Source of the DNA: Macrostomum lignano
Taxonomy: Eukaryota
NCBI GenBank assembly: GCA_002269645.1
Contig: NIVC01003530.1
Span: 1 to 64,000 of the forward strand
Direction: 5' to 3'
Length of the DNA stretch: 64,000 nt
The notes under the pieces are model-generated. The model was not told where the DNA came from. It was given only the letters and a program-made list of their open reading frames with translations, and searched no databases. How positions within the stretch are numbered: the first letter of the stretch is position 1; every line of letters starts with the position of its first letter. A program made the position numbers and the translations under genes. Positions 1,917-56,001 of this stretch are shown piece by piece.

Positions 1917-2238
1917 AGTAGAAGGCATGAGGGGGCTTCTGGGACAAAATTTTTCACCTCCTCCATAATCCTTTTAAATCCATCCATATTATCCCTGACA
2001 GAATCAGAAAAAAGGGGGGTCGCACTCGCTCACAAAACATCCTCCACAATCCTATTAAATCCATCCATATTATCCCTGACAGAATCAGAGCATTATCCCT
2101 GACAGAATCAGAGCATAACAGTAGGACACCTGTTATGCTCACTGACACTGACATAATCCACTGACATCCACCCATAGCATCTTCGAAACAATCAGAAAAT
2201 AATCTGCATTCTTCTCCCCACATTCAATCCGCAACGTG
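1917..2238 (+). repeat. Left terminal inverted repeat of the Polinton (degenerate similarity continues to ~2300)
   Basis: Reverse complement of 17548-17952, apart from one extra ~82-bp subunit on the right and a 1-bp homopolymer difference. Confidence 0.95.
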
Positions 2239-3566: not shown

Positions 3567-4444
3567 TTTCTAAATCTTCTTGTCTTCTAATCTTCTAGTT
3601 TGGCGGACAATTTCTTAGATCACTTTCAGCGTGCTTAAGTTCCTGCAGTCGTCGTTTCTCAGTCGCAGTTGATGGCATATGCGGGGAGAATCAACCCGAG
3701 TGTTTCTGCATTTGCTTAAATACAGCTATACAGCTAGAAAATTCCAGAAAATTCTTAGACTGTACAATCTTGGAGTCAAGCAGGGAAAAAATAATCGATA
3801 TAGCTCAGTGAACGATAGAACATGAGGCGTGTGAATGTGAGGGTGAGCGATCGATTCCCTCCACCCGCTTGAAGTCCCCATACATTTCCTTGGTTGATTG
3901 GGTTTGTCAAAGCGGAAAGGAAAGCACGCGTGGAACTTGTACATTCGCAAAATCGATTAGAGGGCTGCGCTCCCTCAGCAAATAGCAGTTACCCCACCCC
4001 CCTTCTGCTTCTACTTTTCAAAATGCAGCTGTTGCGCTTGGTTAGGGCTGAGAATAATAGTTAAGCCCTTCCCGACTCAAGCGCCCCTCTCTACCACCCC
4101 CCATATTTTCATACCGTAGAGACCAACTAGGCGGGCCACATTCCGAGGCCAAATCGGCGGGCCGAGGCCAACTCGGCGGGCCAACTGGCCTCGCAATTTG
4201 GCCAATAATCAATATCAATCAAGGAGGGAATCTCAACATACACAGTCCATGCATGCTAATGGCGGCGAAGCGGTTGACTTTTTATTTTCTGCTCTTAGCT
4301 CTCTGGAGAATGAGAATCTCTCTTGTGCGCAACTCTTTAGGGAATAAAAAACTGTACTTACTCAAATCCACACTTGCTCATGCCCTTCCCGATTCAAGCG
4401 CCCTTTCTACCCCCAGCTCTTTCAGCAGTCTTCCCAATTTCTTG

Positions 4445-4891
4445 TTAGGAGCGCACAAAATAAACCCTACTCCCAAGCCTCCGCCCTCTCTCCCCGTGCA
4501 CTCGCCCTCTCTCCCCAAACACCGCCCTCGGCGTACACCCCAACCCCAGTTTTGTCTTACTAAAAATAACAGCTTTAACTAGCTTCCGAGCGATCGACTC
4601 ACGAAATCCGCTTGAAGCCCCTATATTGTCTAGTCTCTTAAGCATTTCTTTGTCCCAACGATTCTTCTCCTCAGGAAAATCTCTATATTTAACGTCGTGC
4701 CACATGCAGACAGAGTCTAGCTCGTTCACAGGCTCATGCCCAGGATGTGGATTATTGTTTTTATCTAGCTGTATTTCAAGTGGATTCAAAGGCCCGCAAT
4801 ATTTATAGCCGGGAAGTGTCCAGCCTTTGTTTGGATGAGGAAGCTTTTCTATCAGTCCATGTGAATCTATTTTACCACCAGAGCGCTGCAT
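4445..4891 (-). CDS. Parvovirus-type phospholipase A2 (adintovirus PLA2X-like), 148 aa from MQRSGG
   Basis: LPGYKYCGPLNPL Ca-binding loop and PVNELDSVCMWHDVKY catalytic HD motif. The listed ORF start (5134) overlaps INT; the ATG at 4891 is the plausible start. Confidence 0.88.
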   Translation of the reverse strand: MQRSGGKIDSHGLIEKLPHPNKGWTLPGYKYCGPLNPLEIQLDKNNNPHPGHEPVNELDSVCMWHDVKYRDFPEEKNRWDKEMLKRLDNIGASSGFRESIARKLVKAVIFSKTKLGLGCTPRAVFGERGRVHGERGRRLGSRVYFVRS

Positions 4892-4921
4892 TATTTTATT
4901 TAAAATTTTCTTTTTAAATAA

Positions 4922-5952
4922 ATGACAGATCAGAAACTTAAAAAACTCTACTACAGCGACAAAGGATTCTTTGTAGGCAAAAATGCCGTTAGTAAACTCA
5001 TGGAGCTGAGTAAGGAACCAAAAGCTACAGTAGAAAAATGGCTCTCTAAGCAGGCTCTCTTTCAAGTCTATTTCCCACCAGTAAAATTTACAAGACCTCA
5101 CTTTAACATCTATAAACCTAACGAGGCGCACCAAGCAGATCTTTTGTTTCTCCCAACGACTCAGGCTACAAGTATGCTCTTACAATTACAGACGTTGCTC
5201 CAGATATAAGGAAGCGAGACCGCTTAAGACGAAGAAGTCAGAAGCAGTTGCAGCCGCCCTCCAAGATATTTATAAAAACTCTCCGCTCACATACCCCAAA
5301 TCTTTATGACCGACCCGGGTAAGGAATTCATGGGTGTAGTGAAATCCCTTATGGAAAAGAAAAACACAGAGATTCGCTATGGCAGAACAAACTTGCACAG
5401 AGACCAGGCTTTTGTGGAAAGATTCAATCTAACTCTAGCCAAGAGACTATTCACTAAGCAGACAGCAAGACTCAAACTGAGTGCGGGCAGTACTATACCA
5501 AGTGGACAGAAAGACTCCCCACTGTTATAGAGCAACTGAACAATGAAGTCACACGCATGACTGGATTGAAACCATCCCATGCAATTAAACAAGACACTGT
5601 CGAACTTAAGGCATCTCATAGAACAGACAACAACACGACAACCCCACACAACACACACAACACAAAACACACCTCGAACTACCCTAAGCTTCCAGGAGTT
5701 GAATCACCATACATACTGACAAACTCTGAGTTTCTACGCTTTTTATATCTACCTGGAGAGCTAGAGAAAGACACCAAAAGAAGAGCTACAGATCCATACT
5801 TCAGCCTTGATGTACATAAAATAGACAGACATTTTACCTCCGACTCCGGTGACTATTACTTTTTATCTCAAGCCTTTAACCCTAAATCCCCCACGCGGTC
5901 ATTCACTAGAGCTGAACTCCTAGTGATACCAGCTGACACAGAAATTAATTAA
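4922..5952 (+). CDS. int: Polinton retroviral-like (rve/DDE) integrase, split by several 1-bp frameshifts in this sequence
   Basis: Joining frames gives HQADLLFLP-NDSGYKYALTITDVA-SRYKEARPLKTKK...TDPGKEF...QAFVERFNLTL...KWTERLPTVIEQLNNEVTRMTGLKP, which contains the D-D-E triad. Confidence 0.9.
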
Positions 5953-5968
5953 AATATTAAAATAAAAA

Positions 5969-6420
5969 ATGACAAAGATTGAAACCAGAACCATCAATAA
6001 ACTCAATAAAATCATTGAATCAAAGAAACCAGGTCTTATATCAATTAAAGGTGCCAAAGTAAAAGTCGATCCCACGCAGCAAATAGTTCAGTGTAATGAG
6101 CAAAGACACAGCATCACAGATGAAAAGTCAGGAGGAATCCTACCATTAGCAGCTCTTATTCCGATCATTGCAGGCGCTGTAAGTGCCGCAGGTGGTGTAG
6201 CTGGAGGTGTAGCAACTGCTGTTAAAGCTGGGAATGATAGAGCCCACCAGCTGGAATTGCAAAAGATTGCAAGAGACAAAGGTATAACAATTAAGGCAGG
6301 AGAGGCTGCCCGATTGATGATTGTGATGATTGTGAGCATGAAAATTCTGTAAGCAAGTCTGACATTGTCAAAGCCATCATGACACTGCACAATGCTGGGT
6401 TTACAATAATGCGGATGTGA
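5969..6420 (+). CDS. Adenovirus pX (mu precursor)-like virion core protein; listed ORF 5969-6352, probable frameshifted C-terminus to 6420
   Basis: KSGGILPLAALIPIIAGAVSAAGGVAGGVATAV parallels the adenovirus pX C-terminal MRGG/ILPLLIPLIAAAIGAVPGIASVAL. An alternative frame continues ...DIVKAIMTLHNAGFTIMRM*. Confidence 0.7.
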
Positions 6421-6541
6421 TGAGGTTTAAAACCCACTTTATCCAGCTTCATAAACCTAAAGCTACTATAGGATGTAGAAACAGTTCAACTTTTCTATCA
6501 GGGTGGTCACCCTCAAAATTTTTTTTATATTTTCGAGAAAA

Positions 6542-9500
6542 ATGCCAAAAGCCAATCCAGCAAGAGATTTAGTCAACAAATATTTTTCAAAAGGCGTCTC
6601 ATTTCAAGACAAAAGTAATTACTAAGAGAAGCATGCAAACAAAAGTTCAACACCGACCCTGGTCACCTGGGAAGCTATGAAAAACAGTTGGAAATCATCA
6701 ATCAATTAGAATCAAACCAGTATGCGCCTATAAAAAATTCTGCAAAGGAACACCAAGAGAGGAGTCGCAACTTAGTTAACAAATATGAAACTCTCACTGG
6801 TGAAAAAGCAAAGTACCCACAAAATAAGCAGGAACAAGAGAAATTAGAGCAATTAATCCATTTAAAAGAGTCGGAGCTTGCCACTGAAGAGATTAATTTT
6901 GCACAGACGAAGTTTACAGAACATTACATAGAGTACACAATCCCAATAACGGCACCAACGGTACCACCGCAAACATCTACGACTATAAAGACAGCATCCA
7001 ATCAGTTGTTGATCACACACTCAAAACACGCAAGACTTTAAACTACAGATATCATTCAAGATTGCGTTTTATATGCCTGCAAAACCCACTGAGCATCTCG
7101 AGTATTACATGACAACAAAGGCAAAGCCATTCACCCCAACAGACACACTGGATCCTTTCCTTCAAGATGTCAATAAGAAAATTGAAGCGTTTACATCCAG
7201 AGGTTCCGGATGGGTCGTGGGAGGGATTCAAAGAGCGACTGTCATGGTCATGAAATATGACCCACTTAAAGCCTCCTCTTATATAGAGCTCCCGCATAAG
7301 CTAGCCGGCAAAAAAGCTTGCATAAATGTTAAAAATAAAGACAATTGCTGTGCTCTATGGGCAGTTCTTTCTGCACTTTTTAGTGTACCTCACCACCCCG
7401 AAAGAACCTCAAATTATCAAAATTATTTCAACTACTATCTCATGAATGCGAAAAGAAGGGAATCAGGTTTGACAAAGGAGGCTTGGCGATCTCTCAGATC
7501 CCAAAGCTAGAAGAAGTGTTTAATAACAAAATTAGAATCACAGTCTTTGAGTGGAGTGAAAAAACTGAGAAAGTTCAACCGGTCAGATGTAGCAAAGACG
7601 TTTTAGATCCGAGGGGAAAAGGCGGACTGAAGTGGATCTTCTAGTGATTGGTAATTTACTAGAGGAGGCTCACTATGTTTGGATTAAAGATCTTTCAAGA
7701 CTCATTCACAAGCAGTTGAATAATCATCACGAGGCTGTTGCCATCTGCCGCTTGTGCCTTAAGCATTACAGTGGACCTGAACGCTTTGAAAACTAACAGA
7801 GCATGAATTATCATGCGAGGATCACCCGACAAACTGCTCTCTTCCTTCAGCTGAAGAGAAGTATCTCCGTTTAAGAACTATCACAAGATGGAGAAGCTCC
7901 CATTTGTTGTATATGCTGATTTCGAATGCTCAATCATGCCGGAAACACAAAAACAAACTCAAACTCAAAAACATGTCCCCAATTCAGTAGCATATGCCTT
8001 TATTAATACAAAAGGACTTGTTGAGTATAATTATTTCTTTGGAGAGCAGTGTGTGGAGCAGTTTATTGCCAGAATGTTAGAGTTGCAAAAAGTGATTAGC
8101 ACCCTTCAACCTGTTCCAATAATGATGACTGAGGAGGATGAAAGCAATTTCCTATCAGCAACTCATTGCCACATCTGCAGGAAACATTTAACTTGCACTA
8201 ATATTAAAAACCCCACCGTTAGGGACCACTGCCACTATACTGGGAAATTTAGAGGTGCAGCGCATAACACCTGTAATCTAAAGCTAAAATCGAACATTCA
8301 TGATCTAACGATATTTTGTCACAACGCAAAGAACTATGACATGCATTTAATAGTTGAAAAAATCGGCATGATTCCAGACATACACCTTGATTGCATCGCA
8401 GAGAACAAGGAGAAGTTTAAGTGTGTTGATATTAAACAGGATAATTCGGGTACAGGTAAAATAAGACTGAAGGATTCATATCAATTTCTAGCTGCCAGTC
8501 TAGACGAACTAAGCAAGAATCTAAAAGATGAACAATGTACATATACAAAGATGTTTGCAAGTAAAATTAACAACACTGATGAATCATTTAAACTCCTGAG
8601 AACCAAAGGCTTCTACCCCTATGAAAATATTACTGGGTATCACGTATTTGAAGAAGGTTTACCACCACAGGAGAAGTTCTTTTCAAAGCTAACAGACTCT
8701 GGAATCTCTGACAAAGACTATGAGCACGCGAAGCATGTCTATAATTACTTTAATTGTCAAAACTTCTTCCAGTATCACCTGCTTTACCTCTTCACAGATG
8801 TGTTTCTGCTGGCTGATGTGTTTGAAACCTTCAGATGCACCTGGTACACAGCATATGGCCTCGATCCAGCACATTATGTGTCTCTGCCTGCCACTAGCTG
8901 GGAATCTTTGCTTAAAATGAAATGGGATCAAGATCCAGATTGGTACATTGAACTTCTTACAGACATTGACATGTACAATTTTGTCGAATCGTCAAAGCGA
9001 GGGGGAATCTCAATTTGCACAGTATGCAAAAGCAAACAATCCCTACATTGAATCTTACAATAAGGAGCAGCCCTCAAACTACATTACTTACTTGGACGCT
9101 AATAATCTCTACGGGTGGGCGATGAGTCAAGATCTTCCAGTTAGAGATTTTCGATGGCTACCCTCATCAGAATTAAATGGGACTTTTCATTGGCTGCCAT
9201 TTATGAGGTTGATGTTTACATTCCACCAGAGCTTCACGACTATTTCTCTGACTTTCCACCCTTCCCAGAGAACATCAAGTGCCCGAAAATAATCGAAACT
9301 CCCAATGATAATAATGGAACTTGGCACCTGTCAGGAACAGAAAAAGAACATACAGAGAAACTAACACAGAATCTAAACAACAAGACACGTTACAAAATCC
9401 ATTACAAACTGCTTCATATTTTATCTCACTTGGTTGCAGGGTCACCAAAGTTCACGGGCTCTTACATTTACAGAGGAAGCGTGGATGAAACCCTACATTG

Positions 9501-10342
9501 ATAAGAACACCCAGTTTAGGACCAAAGCAACCAACGACTTTGACAAGAACCTCTTTAAGTTGGCCAACAACTCTGTCTATGGCAAGACTCTTGAGAATGA
9601 GCGGAAAAGAACAAACCTGAAACTTGTTACCTCATCAGAGCCTGATGTTATTCAGGCAAATATGTCAAAGCCAACATTCAAAGAACTCCATATCTTTAAT
9701 AGCTACTTAGGTGTGATCATATTTTACAAAACCAAGGTGACGCTGCGCAAGCCGATCTATACAGGTGTCACTGTTCTCGACGAATCAAAACGTCTGATGT
9801 ACCAGTTCTTCTATGGCATGAAGCAGCAGTACAAGGATAAAATGAAACTCTTGTACACTGACACAGACAGTTTTATTATGGACATTCAAACAGAAGACAT
9901 TTATCAGGACATGCTGCAGCAAAAAGATTTGTTTGACTTGTCTGAGTATGATGAATCTTTCAGGACAGAATGGTGATCAAGTGTTTGACGCCACTAACAA
10001 GAAAGTGATTGGGAAAATGAAGGACGAGATTGCTGGTGACATAATCACTGAATTCATTGGGTTGAGAGCAAAGTCCTATTTTATAAAATGTGAGTCGTCA
10101 GACCCAATAAAAAATCAAAGGGAATTCCGAAACGTGTGGTTAGGAAGGAAATTAATGAAGCTGAATACAGAGACGCCTTGAATTGCAACAAAAAGACATC
10201 ACATGAGTTCTCAAAGCTACAATCTAAAAACCATATTATTCACACAATTCAGCAAAAGAAGATTGGACTGTCAGGTGCAGATAACAAGAGATTCATTTTT
10301 GATGACAATATCAACAGTCTACCGTTCGGGCACTGGAGTTAG
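6542..10342 (+). CDS. polB: Protein-primed family B DNA polymerase (pPolB), fragmented by frameshifts across ORFs 6688, 7073, 7888, 8948, 9154, 9434, 9933 and 10136
   Basis: Polinton N-terminal GSGW...YDPLKASSYIELP...CINVKNKD; ExoI YADFE; Zn-like CHIC...RDHCH...HNTCN; ExoII HNAKNYD; ExoIII YLFTDVFLLADVFE; motif A YLDANNLYGWAM; motif B KLANNSVYGKT; motif C YTDTDS; KVIGKMKDE...EFIGLRAKSY. The 5' start (6542) is tentative. Confidence 0.93.
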
Positions 10343-10431
10343 GTTTAGGAGGTGGGTTAGATTGGTGGATTGGGTTTAGGAGTTGAGATTGGGTTTAGGT
10401 TTAAGAGAAAGTTTAATAAACCTCATAAAAA

Positions 10432-10832
10432 ATGACGACAAATAACTTTCTTGAAGATTTGGCTAACGAACTGGAAATCCCAAACTTTAGAGGAATATTT
10501 ATGAGGGACACTCTGCCTGATTTTCCTCTAAGAAAGGAATGCGGCATCATGAACTTTGACACCACCGATAAGCCAGGATCTCATTGGGTTTGCTGGGTGA
10601 TTGATCCCGATCGCAAGCACAAGTGTTATTACTTCGATAGCTATGGGACGGCAGTACCAGAAGAGCTAAGAAATTATATGAAGGGAAAAAATAATAAAAA
10701 ATTTATCGCTCAGACTTTATTCTCCAAGGTCTTAGCAGTGATATTTGCGGTGAGCTGTGCATGACTGTTTTGTATGCAATGACCAAAACACGAAAGACCT
10801 ACAAGGAAATTATTCTTGGCTGTGTTTCATAG
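10432..10832 (+). CDS. Adenain-like cysteine maturation protease (one frameshift in an A-run near 10700)
   Basis: Catalytic His (GSHW) and Asp (YFDSYG). The corrected frame gives IYRSDFILQGLSSDICGELC (Gln and Cys) ending in TAG at 10830-10832. Confidence 0.9.
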
Positions 10833-10836
10833 GGGT

Positions 10837-11493
10837 TCATTGTGCATTTCTCGTTGTACTTCTCGTTGTCCTTCTTTCCGCATAATGTTGAAAAACTTTC
10901 TCGAGTTCATTTCTCAGCTGACTCATGTCATCAGTACCGACCATGTTCAAGTTCATTCGAATTGATTGTTCATAAAGATCCTGAATGGTTTTGAACTCAT
11001 CCTCTGAAATGAACTTATCCTCGATTGCCCTTGAAATGTACCCTATGATTGATGTGTGCACCCCTTTCTCTTTTACTTGCTTCTCCTGTAGCTGCTTTAG
11101 TTTTTTTCGCCTGTTTCGCGCTACTGCTCCAGTAATTGCTGAAATAAGTCCACATGCAGCACCCACAGAGCCGAGCGGGATTGCGATTGGGGCTGTGATG
11201 ACTGGCAACACTGAGACAGCTGCAGCAGATCCAGATAGAACAGACACAGATCCTAGAATCATATTGCTGTAGTCGAAAAATTTACAGTGGCTTTCATAGC
11301 GTTTAATTTTCTTTGTGTTGTGGAAAATATTTTTTTCAAGATCATCTCGCATTTTTTGAATCTCTACCAGTCGAAACTGTTGAGAGTTACAAGTAATGAC
11401 GGGGTAGAGTTTTTGTTGCTCATATTGGGGTGCACTAGGTGCACTAGGTGTTGTGGGAGCGTTCGGATCATAAAGAGAATTTTGAGCATCCAT
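10837..11493 (-). CDS. Membrane-hairpin protein resembling adintovirus GasderminX-type proteins (218 aa)
   Basis: LYP...FRLVEIQKMRDDLE, then a long hydrophobic hairpin (MILGSVSVL...GLISAITGAVA), a basic RNRRKK and ISRAIEDKFISEDEF. Family assignment is from recollection. Confidence 0.65.
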   Translation of the reverse strand: MDAQNSLYDPNAPTTPSAPSAPQYEQQKLYPVITCNSQQFRLVEIQKMRDDLEKNIFHNTKKIKRYESHCKFFDYSNMILGSVSVLSGSAAAVSVLPVITAPIAIPLGSVGAACGLISAITGAVARNRRKKLKQLQEKQVKEKGVHTSIIGYISRAIEDKFISEDEFKTIQDLYEQSIRMNLNMVGTDDMSQLRNELEKVFQHYAERRTTRSTTRNAQ

Positions 11494-11601
11494 TTTTAAG
11501 GGAATTTTTTTTAAAAAATCGGCAACTAGTTGGTGGTGGTTAGATTTGTTTTACGGTTGATTGCTTCGTCTGCAGTCACGGCAACGGGTCTCTGAATCTG
11601 C

Positions 11602-12345
11602 CTATTCATTATCTGTGAGCTCCATTCTACGCATGATCTCAAACAAGTCGGTTGGATCACTTGTTTCCCTTGTGGTCTGTGGTGCCTCTTCAGCGTCAAT
11701 GTTTTTGAGATTATGCAAGCGTTCAAGACGACCGATTCTTCTCACCGATTTCTGCCATTCGGTAAAAACTAAATCTACAAAGACTTTATTTGCAGTAATT
11801 CTTACTTTGATTTGATCATGCAACGCTGTTGACTGAGTCATGAACTCTTCTAAATTCCTCACTTTACATGTGTTGGTTGCGACGTTTTCTTTAATTCTAT
11901 CATGCAATGCTGTTGACTGGTTCATGAACTCTTCTAAATTCCTCACTTTAACTGCGTTTGTGAAAACTCCTTCTTCAAGAATGCGCATCCGCCTATCAAT
12001 GGAGTTTCTCAGAAGATTAATTGTCGATGCTAAATTTGTTCTTAAACCGTTGATTTGCGAGACTATCGAAGTTATTTCTGACCTAAGTTCATTAGTGCTG
12101 TGATCAAACTGTGCATAAAGCTTATCACTGTCAAACTTCTGTCTAGCTACTTTAAGCCTGAGATCTTCTATGTTTATCTGTAGCTGGTGCATGGAGCGCT
12201 CTAATTGTTTCAGTCTGTTTTTATTCAGTTTGATCTCTGGGATCTTTTCGTCGCTGTTGATATATCGCCTGTCAAGGATGGATACTTGAGCTGATGTAAG
12301 AGCGCTGTTGCCAGAAATGGATTCACCTGCAAAGTTTATTGACAT
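11602..12345 (-). CDS. Coiled-coil protein (247 aa), possible fibre/spike-like
   Basis: Clean ORF with heptad-rich sequence and an internal 28-aa duplication (KVRNLEEFM[N/T]QSTALHD[R/Q]IK). Confidence 0.6.
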   Translation of the reverse strand: MSINFAGESISGNSALTSAQVSILDRRYINSDEKIPEIKLNKNRLKQLERSMHQLQINIEDLRLKVARQKFDSDKLYAQFDHSTNELRSEITSIVSQINGLRTNLASTINLLRNSIDRRMRILEEGVFTNAVKVRNLEEFMNQSTALHDRIKENVATNTCKVRNLEEFMTQSTALHDQIKVRITANKVFVDLVFTEWQKSVRRIGRLERLHNLKNIDAEEAPQTTRETSDPTDLFEIMRRMELTDNE

Positions 12346-12361
12346 CTTTTAATAGCAAATT

Positions 12362-13162
12362 TTAAATTACAGTTCTTTTTTCTTTGCTGATAATCACAAA
12401 CTGGTAAGGCTGATTCCACTTGTCATAGCAAAGATTAACGAATTCCTCTTGTGAAATCTTTCTGCTTGAGTTTTTTGTTGGATTTATGAAATAGGCAGGC
12501 GCAATGACCTCATTGTAAAATCTTTTTAACCTGTCCTGTGGAATGGTTGGAAACAGGAGAATCAGATTGCAGTTCCCACGAATTGTTTTGTTCGGGAGCT
12601 CGAACCAGTTCTGTGCAATGTAAATTACATTACAATTGTTATGTCGCCCTCTTGTAAAATAGTTTTCTATCTGCTTCTGTGGGCCTGTCATACAATCATC
12701 AAAGACGATCAAATGCTTTCTCCCCTTTTCTAGCTCATCTGGTTGGGGTAGAAGTTTGGTCTTTGGATCAGCCTGTGGATCTCCATAGGTGAACACTTTA
12801 ATGTTCTGCCATTTTTCATTGTCTTTGAGGTGCTTTGCATATTCGGCAGCTACAATTTCAGGGTTACTGGGAAGGCTCATTTGGTTATTAAAACATGCAA
12901 TAATGTCCTCTTTGTTCAGCTTGTTTTGAAGCCCTGCAATCAGCATTCTATACTCATCTTGATACAGTGTGGGAGAGTAGATGTGCAGAGTGTCATAGTC
13001 GATAAATCCAGGTCTAAGAAGCATGTTAAAGACTCTGAATGTTTTACCTGAACCTGACGAACCAACAACAATGCATCTGAAGTGACTCGGGATTGACTCA
13101 TGATGAGAAAACTTAATCTGATTACGCGTCCAGTGAGGATTGAAGTCGTTTGAAAAGTCCAT
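12362..13162 (-). CDS. A32/FtsK-HerA-like genome-packaging ATPase
   Basis: Walker A VVGSSGSGKT, Walker B LIVFDD, arginine motif FTRGRHNNCNVIYIAQ, and IRGNCNLILLF. Confidence 0.95.
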   Translation of the reverse strand: MDFSNDFNPHWTRNQIKFSHHESIPSHFRCIVVGSSGSGKTFRVFNMLLRPGFIDYDTLHIYSPTLYQDEYRMLIAGLQNKLNKEDIIACFNNQMSLPSNPEIVAAEYAKHLKDNEKWQNIKVFTYGDPQADPKTKLLPQPDELEKGRKHLIVFDDCMTGPQKQIENYFTRGRHNNCNVIYIAQNWFELPNKTIRGNCNLILLFPTIPQDRLKRFYNEVIAPAYFINPTKNSSRKISQEEFVNLCYDKWNQPYQFVIISKEKRTVI

Positions 13163-13204
13163 TTTTTTCTATGATGAAAAAAAAATAATTAAATAATAAA
13201 TAAT

Positions 13205-13393
13205 TTAGATGTGTCATTTTGGGACTTAGATGTGTCATTTTGGGACTTAGATGTGTCATTTTGGGACTTAGATGTGTCATTTTGGGACTTAGATGTGTCA
13301 TTTTGGTACTTAATTGTGTCATTTTGGGACTTAGATGTGTCATTTTGGGACTTAGATGTGTCATTTTGGGACTTAGATGTGTCATTTTGAGAC
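13205..13393 (+). repeat. 21-bp tandem repeat (TTAGATGTGTCATTTTGGGAC) x~9 inside the Polinton
   Basis: Read directly from the sequence, between the ATPase gene and a core-protein gene. Confidence 0.95.
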
Positions 13394-13436
13394 TAGTCTT
13401 GTACCTTTACATTTCTTGTACCCTCGGAAAGTACCT

Positions 13437-13823
13437 TTAGTCAAATTTGAAACCACTTCCTTTTTTAATGCTTGCTCTCATCTTCTCATAGACTGCAGGG
13501 TCCACACTGTCTGGGTTTGGGGCCAGCGGGGCCAGCGGAGCCAGAGGTTGAATCTCTTGTTTAGGTGTTACAGTATCCTTTATCTTTTTGGCTGCTGTGG
13601 CTACACTGCCAGCCGCTTCGGCAACGTTCTTGATGTTCTCTTTGTTCTCTCCAATGACCTTAAAAATCTTAGCCCCCTGAGCGATCAAATCGGCAAGGCC
13701 ATTCCCGGAGCGCTCTTTTCTTGGATAGTGGCCTGCAGGGAAAAGTCCAGATCCGCGTTTAATAAGATTAAGTTCCTCTTTGTCATAGTATTTGTCAATG
13801 TCTTTTTCGAAAATAAGTGGCAT
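13437..13823 (-). CDS. Putative virion core/membrane-lytic protein with GxG motifs (128 aa from MPLIFE)
   Basis: KRGSGLF, RSGNGLADLIAQGAKIFKVIG (amphipathic helix after GxG) and KKGSGFKFD. ATG at 13823 follows an A-tract. Confidence 0.6.
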   Translation of the reverse strand: MPLIFEKDIDKYYDKEELNLIKRGSGLFPAGHYPRKERSGNGLADLIAQGAKIFKVIGENKENIKNVAEAAGSVATAAKKIKDTVTPKQEIQPLAPLAPLAPNPDSVDPAVYEKMRASIKKGSGFKFD

Positions 13824-13839
13824 TTTTACTTGAAATAAA

Positions 13840-15023
13840 TTATTTTTTGTTGAACCGCGAAAGCAGAAGCTCTCTCGCCCTTTTATCGATGTATTTTCTC
13901 TCAAGCATTTTGTCCAGGATGTTGACAAATTCTTTTCTATTCTCGTCTTTCATTCCGGTCTTTGCCGCTCCTAGAAGAACCGCTACTCGCTTGTAGATTT
14001 CAGCTATTCCTTTTCCAGATTTGGGTGGTTGGTCTTGGGGTTGTGGAGTTGGTTGGGCTTGTGGCTGCTGGGGAGGTGATCCAAAAGACTGCTCACTTTC
14101 AGAGATGGAACTGTCATGTGGCGCCTGTCTTTGTTGAGGTGTGAAAACTCTTTGCTTGATTCTGTTCATTCGATCTGGAGAGTGTTGTTCTAAGTTTGCC
14201 AGTCTGTTGGGTGATCATTTTTATACTTAGCTACTTGAGTCGGATCTGCATTTTCCAGTTGCCTGAGTACTTGTTCTTCTGTGAAATGTTGCTGCTGTTG
14301 TGGCGGTTGCTGTTGTTGCTGTTGTTGTTGTTGTTGTTGTCTTATGACCTCTTCCTGATCCGGCAAACCAAACCATTGTTTAAAGTATTTGTATTTTCTA
14401 AATCTGTTCAAGACAATCCCGTTTTCATGTAAAATTTTCAAAACACCGTTGTTCTTGAGCATATCTATATCCCTATCGAGAGCAAAGGTAACAAGATCTT
14501 TGTAATTTTTGAGCTGCTTTTTAGACGTATTCTCTAGATTTTTAGTCATGTAATCAAGTAAAGTTTGAGTGAACTGGATTCTTTTAGTTTTTGCGCCTTT
14601 ATTGATTGAAATGTTTTCCTTTGTCACTTCAATGTTGTAATCCACCGGTTCCTTGGTAATTTCTTTTCGCCAGGCGCTAATTCCAAAAATATATTTTCCA
14701 TCATCCACTACGGGGCCAAAAAAGTTATCCGTCACTTTCATCTGCACCGGTTGTCCTGGTTCCTGAGCCTGTGGTTGTCCTGGTGAAGATGGGATTTTAC
14801 CCAATGTGTTTTGCAAGTGGCTCTCTTGAATATCATCAACTGCTTCCTTCACAGTGTCGAGGTTTTTCTTCGCTTCTGTGTATCCGGGTTTGTGAAATTC
14901 GGTGGCTGCTTGGACAAACTCATTGTAGGATTGTTGCTCCTTATTTATTAGCCCGGTAACTCGTTTCTCTGCTTGTGCTAGCTTCTCCAATTCAGATATC
15001 TGCTGTGTACTTTTTCGCTTCAT
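13840..15023 (-). CDS. Polinton PZ-like conserved protein; probably one gene split by a frameshift near 14190
   Basis: N-terminal coiled-coil with EFHKPGY, a polyQ stretch, and C-terminal KSGKG...KRVAVLLGAAKTG...EFVNILDKML...I. The two ORFs join with a single frameshift (…NLEQHSPDRMNRIK). Confidence 0.6.
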
Positions 15024-15053
15024 TTCTTATTTTATTTTATTTTTAGTTAAAAA

Positions 15054-16340
15054 ATGAACGACCCACTGACACCAGTTTTCTACAAAATTAACAAGCCTAT
15101 TTTGAGTGATGATAGCACAATCAAAGCGACTCAGGTAAGAGTTCCCAGTCAGGAAAATCAGAATGAAACTAATCTTGGTCCTGGCCAAACACTGACATTT
15201 ACATACAATGGATGTTCGTCTTTGGTTAGTGTGCACAGTCTTAAGAGCGGCTTCCATATGACATTTCAATTCAAGACAAAGGGTGGTGCGGATGCGGCTC
15301 GTGCTAACGTTGACAAGCATGATGCGGATGTGGCTCTGATCAGTAACTTTTGGGCGTACATGTTCAAGGAGTTTAGTGTATCGAATGGGAGCACTGAGTT
15401 GGAGCGAATCGCCAACTTTGGAATTGTCTATGACGCTCATTGTTTGATCGAGAATCCTGATTTTATTCAGTTGGGAAGTGGTGCGGGTTTTATCGCAGAT
15501 GAAAAAGAAGGAGACACCAATGACAGTGGCTATAAAAAGAGGAAGAAGAGATACAACTATGCATTGCAAGGTGCAGATGATGCTGCTAAAAACCCGCTGT
15601 ATCGGTCTGTTGATGTATTTGTACCACTGAGATTCATGAGTGGATTCTGTAATACATTTAATCGACTGACTAGTAACTTTAGCTACACCTTTAGGATGAC
15701 TAGAGATGATCGCAGTAGAGTGTTGTGGACTGGGGCGGATCACACAAGGATGGAGGTGAAGCTAACCGGAATCGAGCTGTATTTGGAAGTCATTGAGCCA
15801 AAGACTGCACTAAAAGCGGATTATCTTAAGGCAATAGAGAAGGACATTGATGTTGCATACACGGCCTACATGTGTCGAGATGAGCGAAACGAAACTAGAA
15901 CAAACATCTGCATTAAAGAGGGATCATGCAGCAATCCACGGTATATTATTATTAACATGAGAAACCCAAATAGCATTATACGCTACATGCATGGAGACGT
16001 GCGGTCCATTCAGCATGAAATCAGTGATAATCTTTACCCTGCACTGCCACAAAATGGAGATTTCAGTCAGAACAAGATTAGCAAATTTTACAGCGAGTTG
16101 GTCGACTTGGCTGTGAAAGAGAACAATGGAATTGCTATCACTGCTCTTCAATATGGAACTCTATATCCGATGTTTGGCGCTGATGTGTCTGCCAGACAAA
16201 TGCCTACTGATAACAGCCCTGTGAATATCGTGACTAACATTGAAAGGACTACCGCAACACCCGTGGACCTGTACATTATCTATGCATTTGAGAGGAAGGT
16301 GAAGCTTAACATGATCAACAATTCATCCAGTAAAGTTTAA
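15054..16340 (+). CDS. Major capsid protein (double jelly-roll, Polinton PY/hexon), 428 aa, intact
   Basis: Size and position fit, with the pattern DDSTIKATQ...NLGPGQTLTF...LISNFWAYMFKEFSV..GSTELERIANFG and beta-rich composition; lies directly upstream of the penton-like gene. Confidence 0.82.
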   Translation: MNDPLTPVFYKINKPILSDDSTIKATQVRVPSQENQNETNLGPGQTLTFTYNGCSSLVSVHSLKSGFHMTFQFKTKGGADAARANVDKHDADVALISNFWAYMFKEFSVSNGSTELERIANFGIVYDAHCLIENPDFIQLGSGAGFIADEKEGDTNDSGYKKRKKRYNYALQGADDAAKNPLYRSVDVFVPLRFMSGFCNTFNRLTSNFSYTFRMTRDDRSRVLWTGADHTRMEVKLTGIELYLEVIEPKTALKADYLKAIEKDIDVAYTAYMCRDERNETRTNICIKEGSCSNPRYIIINMRNPNSIIRYMHGDVRSIQHEISDNLYPALPQNGDFSQNKISKFYSELVDLAVKENNGIAITALQYGTLYPMFGADVSARQMPTDNSPVNIVTNIERTTATPVDLYIIYAFERKVKLNMINNSSSKV

Positions 16341-16364
16341 ATATTTTTTTTGTGGGTGAAAAAA

Positions 16365-17228
16365 ATGGAAGCTATAGCCGAAAGACTAAACAATATTATT
16401 TCGCACTCCAAGGAGAGCATTCCTATTACAATAACTGGGCGGATTAATGACTCAAACGGGATATTTGTTCAAAAATTAGAGCAGGCGATTAGCCTGGATC
16501 CAGGTGCTAATTACCATGTCTATCTTAACGACTTCACTGGTTGGTCAAACGTTCCCAATGTGACGGCAGCAAATAATAAGTTTTATTACAAATGGAAAGG
16601 TGCAGCAGCAGAACCTGTGGTATTCCCTGTGAGCACGCAAAGTGTGGATACCTACAATTACTTTCAAGAAAACGTCTTTACTAAAAGAGGCCATTTTGAG
16701 ACACCTGATATGAGTAAGCCAGAGAAGAAACTGTTCCCTGTTAAACTAACCTATGATCTCACTGTAATGAGAGTGGTCATGCAAGTTCACAAAGATGCGG
16801 AGGTTGAGTTTAAAGATGACACTTGGTATAGGGAATTGGGATTCGTGAAGAAAGTTTATAAGGCAGAATCCACAGCGCGGACTGTCACTCAAGCATCGGG
16901 GGCCGTTAGCATGGCCCGGGAAAGTGTACGCGGTTTGTTCTTAGCACCCAATATAGCAGACATTGTAAAGGGTTTGAATATTCTAATCAGAACTAATCTC
17001 AGTCTTGATTGGGTATTTAAGGGAAAGCGAACTAATATTTTGTACAACATCTCCAACTCTGTAGCTGGAGGACAGATGGTGGTAGAGAAACCAAATCCAG
17101 TGAAAAGAGTTGTATTGAGTAATAAGGAGATTCACGAGATTGTGCTTCAGTTTGAGACTGAAGATGGGATGGGCGTTGATTTTAATGGGGAAGAGTTTGT
17201 ATTGACGTTAATCATTGAGAGAATGTGA
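16365..17228 (+). CDS. Minor capsid protein (penton, single jelly-roll, Polinton PX), intact
   Basis: AISLDPGANYHVYLNDFTGWSNVPNVTAANNKFYY and C-terminal IHEIVLQFETEDGMGVDFNGEEFVLTLIIE are typical Polinton penton patterns. Confidence 0.8.
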   Translation: MEAIAERLNNIISHSKESIPITITGRINDSNGIFVQKLEQAISLDPGANYHVYLNDFTGWSNVPNVTAANNKFYYKWKGAAAEPVVFPVSTQSVDTYNYFQENVFTKRGHFETPDMSKPEKKLFPVKLTYDLTVMRVVMQVHKDAEVEFKDDTWYRELGFVKKVYKAESTARTVTQASGAVSMARESVRGLFLAPNIADIVKGLNILIRTNLSLDWVFKGKRTNILYNISNSVAGGQMVVEKPNPVKRVVLSNKEIHEIVLQFETEDGMGVDFNGEEFVLTLIIERM

Positions 17229-17232
17229 GAAA

Positions 17233-17499
17233 TCACAATTGCCTAATGATTTCTGCAAAGTTATAGTAGCTGTCATAATCTTTTACATAGGTTACTCCAT
17301 ACTTATGAAACCAATGTCTTTGGAGAGCTTGATTAATATTAGGGACATTGATTTGAACGTCGGGCCAATATTTTCTCATGTATTCGCTGCATTCAAGTTT
17401 GCATCGGTACTTACTCTTGTAATTAGGCTCGTGCGTTTTGTAATAAGAACCTGGAGAGACAACTGGAAACATTTTTATTGAAAATTTAATTTTTTTCAA
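17233..17499 (-). CDS. Small orphan ORF (79-88 aa) convergent with the penton gene
   Basis: Tyr/Trp-rich, non-repetitive ORF filling the gap before the right TIR. No recognised motif. Confidence 0.4.
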   Translation of the reverse strand: MKKIKFSIKMFPVVSPGSYYKTHEPNYKSKYRCKLECSEYMRKYWPDVQINVPNINQALQRHWFHKYGVTYVKDYDSYYNFAEIIRQL

Positions 17500-17547
17500 A
17501 GGGTAAGGACCCTGCGCTGATGATTTAAAGTCTTAGGGATCTGGTTT

Positions 17548-17952
17548 CACGTTGCGGATTGAATGTGGGGAGAAGAATGCAGATTATTTTCTGATTGTTT
17601 CGAAGATGCTATGGGTGGATGTCAGTGGATTATGTCAGTGTCAGTGAGCATAACAGGTGTCCTACTGTTATGCTCTGATTCTGTCAGGGATAATGCTCTG
17701 ATTCTGTCAGGGATAATATGGATGGATTTAATAGGATTGTGGAGGATGTTTTGTGAGCGAGTGCGACCCCCCTTTTTTTCTGATTCTGTCGGGGATAATA
17801 TGGATGGATTTAGGTGGATTATGGAGGACGTTTTCGGAGCGAGTGCGACCCCCCTTTTTTTCTGATTCTGTCAGGGATAATATGGATGGATTTAAAAGGA
17901 TTATGGAGGAGGTGAAAAATTTTGTCCCAGAAGCCCCCTCATGCCTTCTACT
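17548..17952 (-). repeat. Right terminal inverted repeat of the Polinton
   Basis: Inverted copy of 1917-2238 with internal tandem subunits (TGATTCTGTCAGGGATAATATGGATGGATTTA...). Confidence 0.95.
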
Positions 17953-19021
17953 GAACGGAGAGACAGTCGGTTCCGCACTCGTTCACCAGCCACTTGAGAC
18001 AGGAGTTAGTCGCTCTATTCACAGCGGCACAGTGAATGGCAGTGCACTGGAGTCGGCCAGGCTGATGGAAGCAGTCGGATCCGAGGACTGATTTGAAGAA
18101 CTGCATGGAATCGGCGCCCTGCTTCCAAGCAGCGAGATGGACGGGAGTGTCTCCTTGTTGGTCTCGAACGGAGAGACAGTCGGTTCCGCACTCGTTCACC
18201 AGCCACTTGAGACAGGAGTTAGTCTCATTCATAGCGGCATGGTGAATGGCAGTGCGTTGGAAATTGCCAGGCTGATGGAAGCAGTCGGATCCGAGGACTG
18301 ATTTGAAAAACTGCATGGAATCGGCGCCCTGCTTCCAAGCAGCGAGATGGACGGGAGTGTCTCCATCTTGGTCTCGAACGGAGAGACAGTCGGTTCCGCA
18401 CTCGTTCACCAGCCACTTGAGACAGGAGTTAGTCGCTCTATTCACAGCGGCACAGTGAATGGCAGTGCACTGGAGTCGGCCAGGCTGATGGAAGCAGTCG
18501 GATCCGAGGACTGATTTGAAAAACTGCATGGAATCGGCGCCCTGCTTCCAAGCAGCGAGATGGACGGGAGTGTCTCCATCTTGGTCTCGAAAGGAGAGAC
18601 AGTCGGTTCCGCACTCGTTCACCAGCCACTTGAGACAGGAGTTAGTTTTTTCATTCGTAGCGGCCCAGTGAATGGCAGTGCGTTGGACTTGGCCAGGCTG
18701 ATGGAAGCAGTCGGATCCGAGGCTGCGGTGAATGAGCTCCATCCATGACTCATCTCGAAACAAGGCAGCCAGGTGCACAGGAGTGTTGCCTCTTTCGTTG
18801 GTGCAGGTGAGGCAGTCGGGTCCCAGTTTCTTAATAAGAGCCTCAAAGCAGCGGAGACCGTCGGATAGATAGGTCACGTGATGAGCAATGGACTGCTCCA
18901 ACTGTTTGATGTTGAGTGCGAAGTTGGCGTCGAGCTGCCGGCAGAGGGGGAAGAGGCGGCCTGCGTCCTTGGCACGGAGGGCTGCAGCGACTTCTTCGCG
19001 CACTGAGGCTTGCCGGGCCAT
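17953..19021 (-). pseudogene. Ankyrin-repeat/kinase gene copy A, 5' part (interrupted by the Polinton)
   Basis: MARQASV... N-terminus identical to copy B. The ankyrin array is cut at the GAACGG TSD. Confidence 0.9.
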
Positions 19022-37650: not shown

Positions 37651-40600
37651 CTGCAGAAATTTGTGCTCCAGCAGCTCCGCGGTGGCCGCTCGCCTCCTCG
37701 GCTCCCTCTGGACGCACCGTCCGTAGAAGTCCCTCAGCAGGGCGGAGGTCCCGGCCGGCAGCTGCGGCATGTCGTGGTTTCGAATCCTCAGCGGGATCTG
37801 CTGCCACATGAGCTGCCAGTTCGGAGGCTGCATCTCTAGCATCTCGAACACGGAGCAGCCGAAAGCCCACACGTCAGTCTTGGGTGAGTACACGATTCTT
37901 CCGTCCTCACTGAACAGCTCAGGAGCCATGAAGTAGGGGGTGCCGCAATCCCTCTTGGTGCTGCGCATCGTGGCGAAGACCTCCTTGGCGAGACCGAAGT
38001 CGATCAGCTTGATGAGGCCTTCGTTGGTGAGCATCAAGTTGGAGCACTTGATGTCACGGTGCAGGGTGACAGGACTGCGGCTGTGCAGGAAGTTGAGCGC
38101 TGCGCAGATCTGTGAGTTGGGGAGCGAGTGAGCAGGGGTGGTGTGGGATCTGAGCTGCTTGGAGAAGTCCCTCACTGCTGCATGGGGTGGTGTGGGATCT
38201 GAGCTGCTTGGAGAAGTCCCTCACTGCTGCATGGGGTGGTGTGGGATCTGAGCTGCTTGGGAAGTCCCTCACTGCTGCATGGGCTGGTATGGGATCTGAG
38301 CTGCTTGGAGAAGTCCCTCACTGCTGCATGGGGTGGTGTGGGATCTGAGCTGCTTGGAGAAGTCCCTCACTGCTGCATGGAGTGGTGTGGGATCTGAGCT
38401 GCTTGGAGAAGTCCCTCACTGCTGCATGGGGTGGTGTGGGATCTGAGCTGCTTGGAGAAGTCCCACACTGCTGCATGGGGTGGTGTGGGATCTGAGCTGC
38501 TTGGAGAAGTCCCTCACTGCTGCATGGGGTGGTGTGGGATCTGAGCTGCTTGGAGAAGTCCCACACTGCTGCATGGAGTGGTGTGGGATCTCACCTGCTT
38601 GGAGAAGTCCCTCACTGCTGCCTCATCGAAGGGCCGTCGCTGCAGCTGCATCAGCTCAGAGAGGCTGTGGCCGGAGATCAGCTCGGTGAAGATGCACAGC
38701 TTGCCCTTCTGGATGCGCTCAGACTTGAGGAACTGCACGATGTTCGGGTGCCGGATGGCCTTCAGGACGGAGATCTCCGCGTTCTCTATCTCGATGGCCT
38801 CGTCCATCAGCCTGGCGCTGCTGGCACCTTCCAGCCTGACGATCTTGACAGCCACAGTCTGGCGCTTATCGGTGAACGCCTTGTACACCTTGCCGAAGCC
38901 GCCTGCTCCGAGCAGCTGCTTGTTGCCGTCACCATCGAGAAGGAAGTCCCAGCTGGAGAAGGCGGGGTCCAGTGACGGCCTCGCACTGAAAGAGGAGTGG
39001 GTTGGGAGACTGAAGCACTGCGGGATGGCTGCAGAAATGGAGAACTGAGCAGGCAGGGAGAGTCTGTCAGCTGATCATTGTGAGCCACTCTTAGCTGAAC
39101 CGAATGCAATTTCCCAAGTGAAAAGTGGAAGACGGCCTGCCTTGCTGACGGAGTCTCCTCGGACTGCGCGTCCACCGCCCGCCGCAGCTGCAAGCCCGAC
39201 ATCGCCTGGCCCAGCCTCCGCTCTTCTCCATCACGCTGGTGCCGCCGCTGCTCTGCGATCCACTCCCGAATCCGAGCTCCGTGCTGAGAGTTCCGCTCTG
39301 CGTAGTCGGCCACCGACTTGCCACCGGAATCGAAAAAGTCGAATGGGGCGAGGCCGAGAGAGTCCGCGATGAGGCGGAGCGAGTCTAGGTCGTGATGCTG
39401 AGCAGCCAGGTGAGCAGGTGTGGCTCCGTTTGAGTCTTTTTCCAACAGACAGGCCGGACCGAGCTCAGAGATGAGCCACTTGAGACAGGAGTTGGTCTCA
39501 TTCATAGCAGCAAAGTGAATGGCAGTGCGTTTGCAATTGCCAGGCTGATGGAAGCAGTCGGATCCGAGGACTGATTTGAAGAACTGCATGGAATCGGCGC
39601 CCTGCTTCCCAGCAGCGAGATGGACGGGAGTGTCTCCGGCTTGGTCTCGAACGGAGAGACAGTCGGTTCCGCACTCGTTCACCAGCCACTTGAGACAGGA
39701 GTTAGTCTTCTTATTCATAGCGGCCCGGTGAATGGCAGTGCGTTGTAAGTAGCCAGGCTGATGGAAGCAGTCGGATCCGAGGACTGATTTGAAAAACTGC
39801 ATGGAATCGGCGCCCTGAAACTTAGCAGCGAGATGGACGGGAGTGTCTCCGGCTTGGTCTCGAACGGAGAGACAGTCGGTTCCGCACTCGTTCACCAGCC
39901 ACTTGAGACAGGAGTTAGTTTTTTCATTCGTAGCGGCACAGTGAATGGCAGTGCACTGGAGTCGGCCAGGCTGATGGAAGCAGTCGGATCCGAGGACTGA
40001 TTTGAAGAACTGCATGGAATCGGCGCCCTGAAACTCAGCAGCGAGATGGACGGGAGTGTCTCCGGCTTGGTCTCGAACGGAGAGACAGTCGGTTCCGCAC
40101 TCGTTCACCAGCCACTTGAGACAGGAGTTAGTAGCTTCATTCCTAGCGGCCCGGTGAATGGCAGTGCGTTGTAAGTAGCCAGGCTGATGGAAGCAGTCGG
40201 ATCCGAGGACTGATTTGAAGAACTGCATGGAATCGGCGCCCTGAAACTTAGCAGCGAGATGGACGGGAGTGTCTCCGGCTTGGTCTCGAACGGAGAGACA
40301 GTCGGTTCCGCACTCGTTCACCAGCCACTTGAGACAGGAGTTAGTCTCATTCACAGCGGCACAGTGAATGGCAGTGCACTGGAGTCGGCCAGGCTGATGG
40401 AAGCAGTCGGATCCGAGGACTGATTTGAAAAACTGCATGGAATCGGCGCCCTGCTTCCAAGCAGCGAGATGGACGGGAGTGTCTCCATCTTGGTCTCGAA
40501 CGGAGAGACAGTCGGTTCCGCACTCGTTCACCAGCCACTTGAGACAGGAGTTAGTCGCTCTATTCACAGCGGCACAGTGAATGGCAGTGCACTGGAGTCG

Positions 40601-41143
40601 GCCAGGCTGATGGAAGCAGTCGGATCCGAGGACTGATTTGAAAAACTGCATGGAATCGGCGCCCTGCTTCCAAGCAGCGAGATGGACGGGAGTGTCTCCA
40701 TCTTGGTCTCGAAAGGAGAGACAGTCGGTTCCGCACTCGTTCACCAGCCACTTGAGACAGGAGTTAGTTTTTTCATTCGTAGCGGCCCAGTGAATGGCAG
40801 TGCGTTGGACTTGGCCAGGCTGATGGAAGCAGTCGGATCCGAGGCTGCGGTGAATGAGCTCCATCCATGACTCATCTCGAAACAAGGCAGCCAGGTGCAC
40901 AGGAGTGTTGCCTCTTTCGTTGGTGCAGGTGAGGCAGTCGGGTCCCAGTTTCTTAATAAGAGCCTCAAAGCAGCGGAGACCGTCGGATAGATAGGTCACG
41001 TGATGAGCAATGGACTGCTCCAACTGTTTGATGTTGAGTGCGAAGTTGGCGTCGAGCTGCCGGCAGAGGGGGAAGAGGCGGCCTGCGTCCTTGGCACGGA
41101 GGGCTGCAGCGACTTCTTCGCGCACTGAGGCTTGCCGGGCCAT
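37648..41143 (-). CDS. Ankyrin-repeat + STE/MAP3K-like Ser/Thr kinase, copy B (exons ~39141-41143, 38595-38985, 37648-38109)
   Basis: Seven 70/71-aa double-ankyrin units, then [36 protein letters not shown] and DVWAFG. Exon 2/3 GT-AG sites and phases are consistent. The exon-1 donor is uncertain (possibly GC-AG, AAG|GCAGGC). Confidence 0.9.
38135..38594 (-). repeat. 49-bp intronic minisatellite (kinase intron 2, copy B)
   Basis: Same unit, derived from the exon-2/intron junction. Confidence 0.95.

Positions 41144-44823: not shown

Positions 44824-56001
<11,178 letters not shown>

Follow-up and report, generated by a model that had tools for sequence, protein, structure and literature searches.

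Why would a flatworm gene carry one ankyrin cassette six times over, almost unchanged in DNA, and let only a few clusters of codons differ between one cassette and the next? The question is raised by the first 64 kb of Macrostomum lignano contig NIVC01003530.1 (assembly GCA_002269645.1), the whole stretch that was analysed here and that we call the window. On its minus strand, at 37648-41143, lies BOX15_Mlig018440g1 (P0266), annotated as "hypothetical protein". The gene is thus already on record; what is new is its interpretation only. Its product joins an array of double-ankyrin units to a protein kinase. With moderate confidence, we read the array as a variable cytosolic recognition module that drives the kinase, or a caspase in sister genes, and that would owe its diversity to exchange of units combined with diversifying selection.

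The ankyrin array and its variable codons

A three-exon model (41143-39141, 38985-38595 and 38109-37648) encodes a protein of 951 amino acids. P0266 agrees with this model residue for residue beyond its own first eight residues, which are the translation of the sequence immediately upstream of the start codon. An initial annotation of this DNA had set the array and kinase at 39400-40910; this interval does hold the array, and the kinase is encoded beyond it, in the second and third exons. From N- to C-terminus, the protein consists of a capping region (with the first capping ankyrin repeat and the first B-type repeat), six double-ankyrin units of 71 or 70 residues, a C-terminal cap, a long linker and a kinase of the STE group; these parts together account for its entire length. 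The linker is predicted to be helical (helix at 620-661) and ends in ...QSEETPSA.

Pfam scans of the exon-1 frame, and of open reading frames (ORFs) that span almost the whole of exons 2 and 3, returned ankyrin and kinase families only; no NACHT, NB-ARC, NOD or death-fold domain was found in them. Membership of the NOD-like receptor (NLR)/STAND class was rejected for want of a NOD domain. Nor was a hydrophobic segment fit for a signal peptide or a membrane span found in the protein sequence, and a secreted or membrane receptor was rejected on this ground. The cytoplasmic location first suggested for the protein is consistent with its sequence.

Tandem Repeats Finder reports a 213-bp period, in 6.5 copies, at 39474-40844, and anchors within the array are 210 or 213 bp apart; the near-identical 210/213-bp double-ankyrin units of the initial annotation are indeed there, on the minus strand. 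Each unit comprises two different ankyrin repeats, one of 35 and one of 36 or 35 residues. Over the approximately 426 residues of the array, mean identity between units is 90%, with a minimum of 83%. The Pfam family Ank_2 matches with E = 3e-53 (178.8 bits against a cut-off of 27.3), and Ank with 142 bits. An AlphaFold2 model of the N-terminal cap plus two units, built with the family alignment, shows paired helices in each repeat, at a predicted local distance difference test (pLDDT) score of 96.3 and a predicted template modelling (pTM) score of 0.91; a single-sequence model of the entire exon-1 protein was discarded (pLDDT 51). In Foldseek searches, the former model aligns with the ankyrin domains of EHMT1 and Espin at template modelling scores of 0.70-0.75. 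By family match and by model, the array is an ankyrin solenoid and a member of the ankyrin repeat superfamily.

The gene is present twice in the window, as the intact gene just described (copy B) and as a copy split by an insertion (copy A). When the twelve units of the two copies are aligned, their DNA differences are confined to a few codon clusters; outside these clusters, and leaving aside changes private to copy A, a single synonymous polymorphism is seen. Between them, the two copies contain all of the variable motifs listed in the initial annotation: DQ[D/A/Q]G, HLAA[WK/KF/EF/GK], QPG[RLQC/YLQR/NFQR/NCKR/QVQR]T, AIH[C/R/H/Q/W/F] and AA[VNRA/VNE/RNEA/TNEK/MNKK/MNE]. To place this variation in the family, we compared 40 intact units from seven genes, namely the two copies in the window and, on three other contigs, one kinase paralog and four caspase paralogs. 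Units are numbered from the N of NSCLKWL. Amino-acid entropy reaches 1.3-2.65 bits at codons 22, 24, 32, 33, 56, 57, 59, 64 and 67; codons 69 and 70 are moderately variable; and the remaining 60 codons stay below 0.4 bits. Clustering is pronounced at the nucleotide level too, with 34 of the 50 variable columns falling within 12 of the 71 codons (hypergeometric P = 8e-25).

Where these codons lie in the fold is best seen by comparison with designed ankyrin repeat proteins (DARPins), whose libraries, in the work of Binz et al. from 2003, reportedly randomise positions 2, 3, 5, 13, 14 and 33. When repeat A is taken to begin at D20 (DQxGxTPVHLAAxx...) and repeat B at G55 (GxxQxTAIHxAAxN...), hypervariability falls on positions 3, 5, 13 and 14 of repeat A and 2, 3, 5, 10 and 13 of repeat B. 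Eight of the nine coincide with library positions 2, 3, 5, 13 and 14 (P = 4e-7), which bears out the DARPin analogy drawn in the initial annotation; six positions per repeat are randomised in DARPins (PMC9611651). The ninth site, position 10 of repeat B, precedes positions 13 and 14 by one helical turn and would for that reason face the same groove. An extended hairpin insertion in repeat B, considered as another way to align this repeat, is unneeded, as the start at G55 puts the variable residues at canonical positions 2, 3 and 5. One site differs between window and family: the GxTP site (DARPin position 5) is D throughout the window and hypervariable in the paralogs only.

In the AlphaFold2 model, the variable residues sit in the loop preceding helix 1 and in the final turn of this helix; by the model and the unit entropies, helix 2, the inter-repeat loops and the convex face are invariant. 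A second subfamily of units, with a framework about 50% identical to that of the first and homogenised separately, varies in the same topology (positions 2, 3, 5 and 13 of repeat A; 2, 3 and 13 of repeat B).

Exchange of units and possible selection on contact codons

Framework DNA is 98.4-99.5% identical, and this is equally so for units of one gene, for units of different kinase genes, and for a unit of a kinase gene set against one of a caspase gene. The caps tell a different story: they are 74-93% identical across the seven genes, and between kinase and caspase genes the N-terminal caps are 83-84% and the C-terminal caps about 74% identical. Purifying selection cannot explain the identity of the units at synonymous sites, which argues that units have been exchanged between loci. 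Unit number ranges from three to at least 11 among paralogs, with the terminal units kept and the internal units different. Conserved ends with diverged interiors are a product of unequal exchange in tandem arrays.

The variable blocks behave as cassettes. Fifty-two amino-acid block haplotypes correspond to 54 nucleotide haplotypes, such that each block is essentially a single nucleotide haplotype, and identical haplotypes are re-sorted among units and genes into new combinations. Since one nucleotide haplotype per block is common to several genes, recombinational shuffling, rather than convergent mutation, accounts for the recurrence. Four-gamete combinations between blocks, along with the recurring nucleotide haplotypes, agree with the earlier description of the units as mosaics reshuffled by recombination.

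The two copies in the window give a sense of the pace. Caps and linker show no mismatch between copies A and B in 730 sites, and the framework shows 4 in 1060; the hypervariable codons, by contrast, show 57 in 204 (28%), and at least one block is changed in four or five units out of six. Identical caps beside unlike hypervariable codons imply that the content of the array turns over much faster than its flanks diverge.

In the framework, synonymous diversity (piS) is 0.029 and nonsynonymous diversity (piN) 0.0033; the framework is under purifying selection and has a very recent common ancestry. The nine hypervariable codons have a piN of 0.435, 15 times the framework piS. Counts of nonsynonymous and synonymous alleles (N:S) are 44:8 for the hypervariable codons, against 7:9 for the framework (Fisher p = 0.002). 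These two contrasts lend partial support to the diversifying selection proposed in the initial annotation.

Several points weigh against our reading of the array as a recognition module under such selection. Inside the hypervariable codons alone, the nonsynonymous-to-synonymous ratio (omega) is about 1.6, which falls short of formal proof of positive selection. Overall piS in the clusters is 0.27, and even the invariant Q58 shows CAG and CAA variants; with synonymous diversity raised in this way, locally elevated mutation or the long survival of old block haplotypes is inseparable from positive selection. The pattern fits old haplotypes shielded from homogenisation as well as it fits selection for new ones. 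It is by homology and by the secondary structure of the model that the variable residues are assigned to the ligand-binding face. A single assembly, of a single inbred line, supplied all of the DNA; neither a NOD nor a death-fold domain links the protein to known innate-immune machinery; and literature searches found no functional, expression or ligand data for the gene.

Could the variation then be a neutral by-product, in which a recently amplified coding minisatellite is homogenised while unconstrained surface positions drift? The raised synonymous diversity of the clusters and their omega of about 1.6 are what such drift would give, and the window is full of minisatellites, so that repeat amplification appears common in the M. 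lignano genome. Homogenisation should, however, wipe neutral variable sites clean just as it does the synonymous sites of the framework, and instead they are 15 times more diverse, with an N:S ratio significantly above the framework's. Moreover, variation is found only at binding-face positions and not at all exposed ones, helix 2 and the convex face being invariant, and a second subfamily, homogenised on its own, varies at the same positions. We regard neutral drift as quite unlikely.

It is also conceivable that diversity is programmed, by somatic cassette assembly resembling that of the lamprey variable lymphocyte receptors (VLRs) or by targeted hypermutation. Nucleotide diversity is sharply local, synonymous changes included, as either process might produce. 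Yet the germline ORF is complete and the same as the annotated protein, the blocks are discrete common haplotypes rather than a cloud of point mutants, and all four bases are in use at the variable columns (A 27, G 25, T 20, C 15), with no adenine-specific signature. On these grounds, an incomplete germline gene of the VLR type and mutagenesis by a diversity-generating retroelement were both rejected, and we see very little chance that programmed diversification of any kind is at work.

Finally, the composition of the arrays could be an artefact of mis-assembly or of read errors within a repeat. The evidence does come from a single long-read assembly, and the single-base deletions of copy A, three of which (out of four) fall in homopolymer runs, could be read errors. 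But the differences between units are in frame, structured by codon and recur as identical blocks on four other contigs, and arrays of 1.3 kb are well below the length of a single long read. We hold such an artefact to be highly improbable.

Effector domains and layout of the locus

The kinase has all of its catalytic motifs, including APE, and matches Pkinase with E = 3e-32. Nearly all of the best 60 matches among solved structures are STE20 or MAP3K kinases, to which the catalytic domain is 30-35% identical. Scores are 137-138 bits for STK10/SLK, 134 bits for MST3/4 and 118 bits for MAP3K5. MAP3K15 is the first kinase match outside Macrostomum, and a plant MEKK, 42% identical across the C-lobe, is among the nearest non-flatworm relatives; a representative search with the C-lobe, along with cluster look-ups, gives a coarse STE/MEKK-like placement only. 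These results support the prediction of an intact STE-group Ser/Thr kinase. The label "MAP3K-like" used in the initial annotation is only partly borne out; it is not mistaken, but it is unspecific, as STE20-type kinases (SLK/STK10, MST3/4, PAK) come out slightly above MAP3K5.

At least 30 M. lignano proteins have the double-ankyrin architecture joined to kinases, and genes of the family are arranged in tandem clusters. No orthologue was found outside M. lignano, to which all matches with E <1e-59 belong. In the sister genes P0002, P0009 and P0016, the ankyrin array is followed instead by an intact caspase domain (Peptidase_C14, E = 9.5e-42) with the motif QACRG. Kinase and caspase genes are homologous up to the end of the sensor exon (...QSE[E/K]TP...), where a phase-2 intron follows; homology ending at this shared intron marks sensor module and effector as separate sets of exons. 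Swapping of effectors by exon shuffling is plausible from this gene structure. P0029 combines a second-subfamily array with a different type of kinase, and P0122, P0006 and P0121 carry kinase domains in tandem (two or three of them) or a pair of full ankyrin arrays in one protein. Such variants suggest frequent domain shuffling in the family. Caspase genes with the same hypervariable units also stand in tandem, at 1-3728 and 12455-13728 of L002 and at about 8800-12562 and 21065-22562 of L003, the first gene of L003 including frameshifted units.

The features of both copies are collected in Table 1. Two annotated proteins, P0001 and P0266, bear out the GC-AG junction of intron 1, and indels between copies A and B cluster in this intron. 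Intron 2 is nearly filled by a minisatellite (38110-38621, with a counterpart at 1-468 in copy A) whose 49-bp unit copies the junction with exon 2, taking 27 nt from the exon end and 22 nt from the intron start. Each of the nine extra copies has CTCAG in place of the splice donor GTGAG, so that a donor survives only at the first junction.

Table 1. Features of the kinase gene (copy B) and of its split duplicate (copy A) in the window. Codon u of a unit that starts at plus-strand coordinate S runs from S-3(u-1) down to S-3(u-1)-2.
Feature	Position	Strand	Basis or detail
Exon 1 start, N-terminal capping region	40766..41143	(-)	ORF, identity to P0266; ATG at 41143-41141
Six double-ankyrin units	39494..40765	(-)	Tandem Repeats Finder, anchor spacing, unit alignments
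Unit 1	40765-40553	(-)	213 bp
Unit 2	40552-40343	(-)	210 bp
Unit 3	40342-40130	(-)	213 bp
Unit 4	40129-39917	(-)	213 bp
Unit 5	39916-39704	(-)	213 bp
Unit 6	39703-39494	(-)	210 bp
Exon 1 end: diverged C-terminal capping repeat and helical linker	39141..39493	(-)	100% identical in copy A
Intron 1, phase 2, GC donor AAG/GCAGGC, acceptor TTTCAG/T	38986..39140	(-)	junction matches annotated proteins
Exon 2: kinase N-lobe, GAGGFG glycine loop, VAVK	38595..38985	(-)	Pfam, gene model
Intron 2, GT-AG, nearly all 49-bp minisatellite	38110..38594	(-)	repeat and sequence comparison
Exon 3: kinase C-lobe and stop codon	37648..38109	(-)	Pfam, gene model
Copy A 5' part: N-terminal cap identical to copy B and three units, cut after ...CLSV	17953..19021	(-)	alignment to copy B
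Insertion splitting the copy A array	1919..17952	.	about 40% G+C, terminal inverted repeats, direct repeat GAACGGAG
Copy A 3' part: three units, C-terminal cap, linker, intron 1, exon 2, start of intron-2 minisatellite	1..1918	(-)	

Without its insertion, copy A has six units, and the gene continues past the edge of the window. Relative to copy B, its coding sequence has four frameshifting single-base deletions: two in units (after KWL and in GDTP), one in the C-terminal cap and one in the glycine loop of the kinase. Three of the four are in same-base runs, where read errors are possible; judged by its sequence, copy A is a probable pseudogene. Its 5' part is intact and matches copy B exactly. 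The 16-kb insertion has terminal inverted repeats several hundred bases long and ORFs for a protein-primed family-B DNA polymerase (7888-9051, carried on in a separate ORF at 9434-9976), an A32-like packaging ATPase (12362-13162), a double-jelly-roll capsid-like protein (15054-16340, under the Pfam cut-off) and a parvovirus-type phospholipase A2 domain (4445-5134). From this gene content, it looks like an endogenous element of the Maverick/Polinton (adintovirus-like) type.

About 190 bp upstream of the start codon, a 17-bp minisatellite (AGGTGAGCGACACGGGA) begins in both gene copies. It has 54.5 copies at 41336-42261 and 42.5 at 19214-19935, the number being unlike between the duplicates, and minisatellites with 21-bp and 40-bp units lie beyond it in both. 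Upstream of copy A, a long terminal repeat (LTR) retrotransposon fragment (22699-24763) encodes RNase H and the zinc-binding and core domains of an integrase; from how far apart the flanking repeats lie, the matching place upstream of copy B appears to lack it. The neighbouring gene, also on the minus strand, encodes a discoidin-domain-receptor-like tyrosine kinase (DS-like domain, E = 1e-38; Tyr-kinase domain, E = 5e-64) and has sequence at 25322-26038, about 45.4-46.1 kb and 55267-56940. Repeat patterns suggest that the 3' part of this neighbour lies within the segmental duplication and has an extra truncated copy. Between the two duplicated blocks, on the plus strand, is a glutamine synthetase gene (31873-34143) that contains a 13-bp microsatellite of 50 copies.

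Possible recognition role and comparison with known systems

How might such a protein work? Under the reading that we favour, unequal crossing-over and gene conversion would shift whole or partial units within and between arrays, a movement that would homogenise the framework and at the same time yield new combinations of contact residues, with selection keeping diversity at the contact codons. The array would thereby be a rapidly diversifying recognition surface. A ligand bound in its groove may control the C-terminal effector, either by lifting autoinhibition or by bringing the proteins together in clusters. In the kinase gene, this would start a phosphorylation cascade of the STE/MAPK type; in the caspase paralogs, it would give proximity-induced protease activation. 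The likeliest setting, and the least certain step, would be recognition of fast-evolving partners such as pathogens, mobile elements or conspecific non-self. A role in immunity, allorecognition or genetic conflict is plausible.

Alternatively, the arrays may be endogenous adaptors that recruit host substrates or regulators, for example in stem cells, regeneration or reproduction, with subfunctionalisation or sexual conflict behind their diversity. Ankyrin domains are commonly adaptors for substrates or partners, flatworm ankyrin-prodomain caspases have been discussed as initiators of apoptosis (PMC11463336), and Pfam finds no immune-specific domain in the sequence. Stable endogenous partners would not favour continual reshuffling, though, and copies with identical flanks already differ in four to five of six units, while blocks are swapped between genes with different effectors. 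We therefore think an adaptor function unlikely.

A bolder version of the recognition hypothesis would be an animal receptor system free of NOD domains, in which DARPin-like double-ankyrin cassettes, exchanged from a common pool, are wired to a MAPK-cascade-type kinase or a caspase and trigger signalling or cell death upon contact with pathogens, mobile elements or conspecific non-self; it would be an independently evolved counterpart of allorecognition and immunity of the HET-E type. We put this forward tentatively, as a possibility that we would not expect to hold in full.

The closest described system is that of the fungal NLR/STAND proteins (the WD40 proteins HET-E, HET-D and HET-R of Podospora; PNP_UDP-NACHT-ANK; NB-ARC-TPR). 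Their repeats are approximately 85-90% identical, evolve in concert, are exchanged and vary in number; their binding-face sites, which for ankyrin are in the inner helix and the hairpin loop, are hypervariable; and interchangeable effectors are mounted on similar sensor arrays (PMC4986451). The M. lignano repeats are likewise conserved, exchanged, variable in number and hypervariable on the binding face, with interchangeable effectors. Their mean identity of 90% lies above the threshold of about 85% over 100 residues or more that marks such repeats. The parallel to HET-E made in the initial annotation is sound in this sense: units are highly conserved inside the array, paralogs are homogenised both internally and with one another, and the hypervariable sites are assigned to the surface. 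Unlike the fungal proteins, however, the M. lignano protein has no NACHT or NB-ARC domain, its effector is C-terminal and directly fused, its host is an animal, and its unit pairs two non-identical ankyrin repeats. Several of the fungal genes are proven incompatibility genes, whereas the M. lignano gene is known from its sequence.

With DARPins, the array shares a constant framework, diversity at positions 2, 3, 5, 13 and 14, and diverged N- and C-terminal caps. It differs in being natural, germline-encoded and fused to an enzyme, in alternating two types of repeat, and in that position 33 is invariant, position 10 of repeat B is variable and cysteine is allowed at variable sites. Among animal proteins, the zinc fingers of PRDM9 are described as a coding minisatellite with concerted evolution and rapid change at ligand-contact residues (PMC8925151), and to that extent the M. 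lignano array resembles them. PRDM9, in contrast, is a single gene with a DNA ligand and another fold, whereas the M. lignano units are common to genes with different effectors. Lamprey VLRs, too, use a solenoid repeat protein as a variable recognition surface and copy cassettes; they consist of leucine-rich repeats and are assembled somatically from an incomplete germline gene, unlike the complete germline gene described here, which shows no sign of a somatic process. TNNI3K, ILK, RIPK4/ANKK1 and DAPK1 also combine ankyrin repeats with a protein kinase in one chain. To our knowledge, their repeats are diverged and not hypervariable, and their kinases are of other groups (TKL, CAMK).

Flatworm ankyrin caspases, described in a study of lophotrochozoan caspases, have the architecture of P0002, P0009 and P0016; the window gene instead has a kinase, and hypervariable arrays go unmentioned in that study (PMC11463336). 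Ankyrin-prodomain caspases are reported there to be specific to parasitic flatworms. M. lignano is free-living and has ankyrin caspase genes, which contradicts this claim. Highly conserved ANK, TPR or WD repeats occur in about 0.8% of metazoan repeat proteins (PMC4986451), and for the M. lignano family we found no description of hypervariability in the literature under the gene identifiers or under Macrostomum and ankyrin.

Near-identical arrays that vary at contact residues are a rare germline route to diversity in recognition, documented in fungal NLRs and in PRDM9. If our reading is right, a flatworm would have built such a system from ankyrin repeats, coupled to kinases and caspases and with cassettes common to both classes of effector. 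The framework would then represent natural DARPin-style binders that tolerate a double repeat of 35 plus 36 or 35 residues, and the puzzling ankyrin-prodomain caspases of flatworms would gain a possible function. M. lignano is amenable to transgenesis and RNA interference, and the family would then offer a tractable animal model for recognition repertoires that need neither NOD domains nor somatic recombination.

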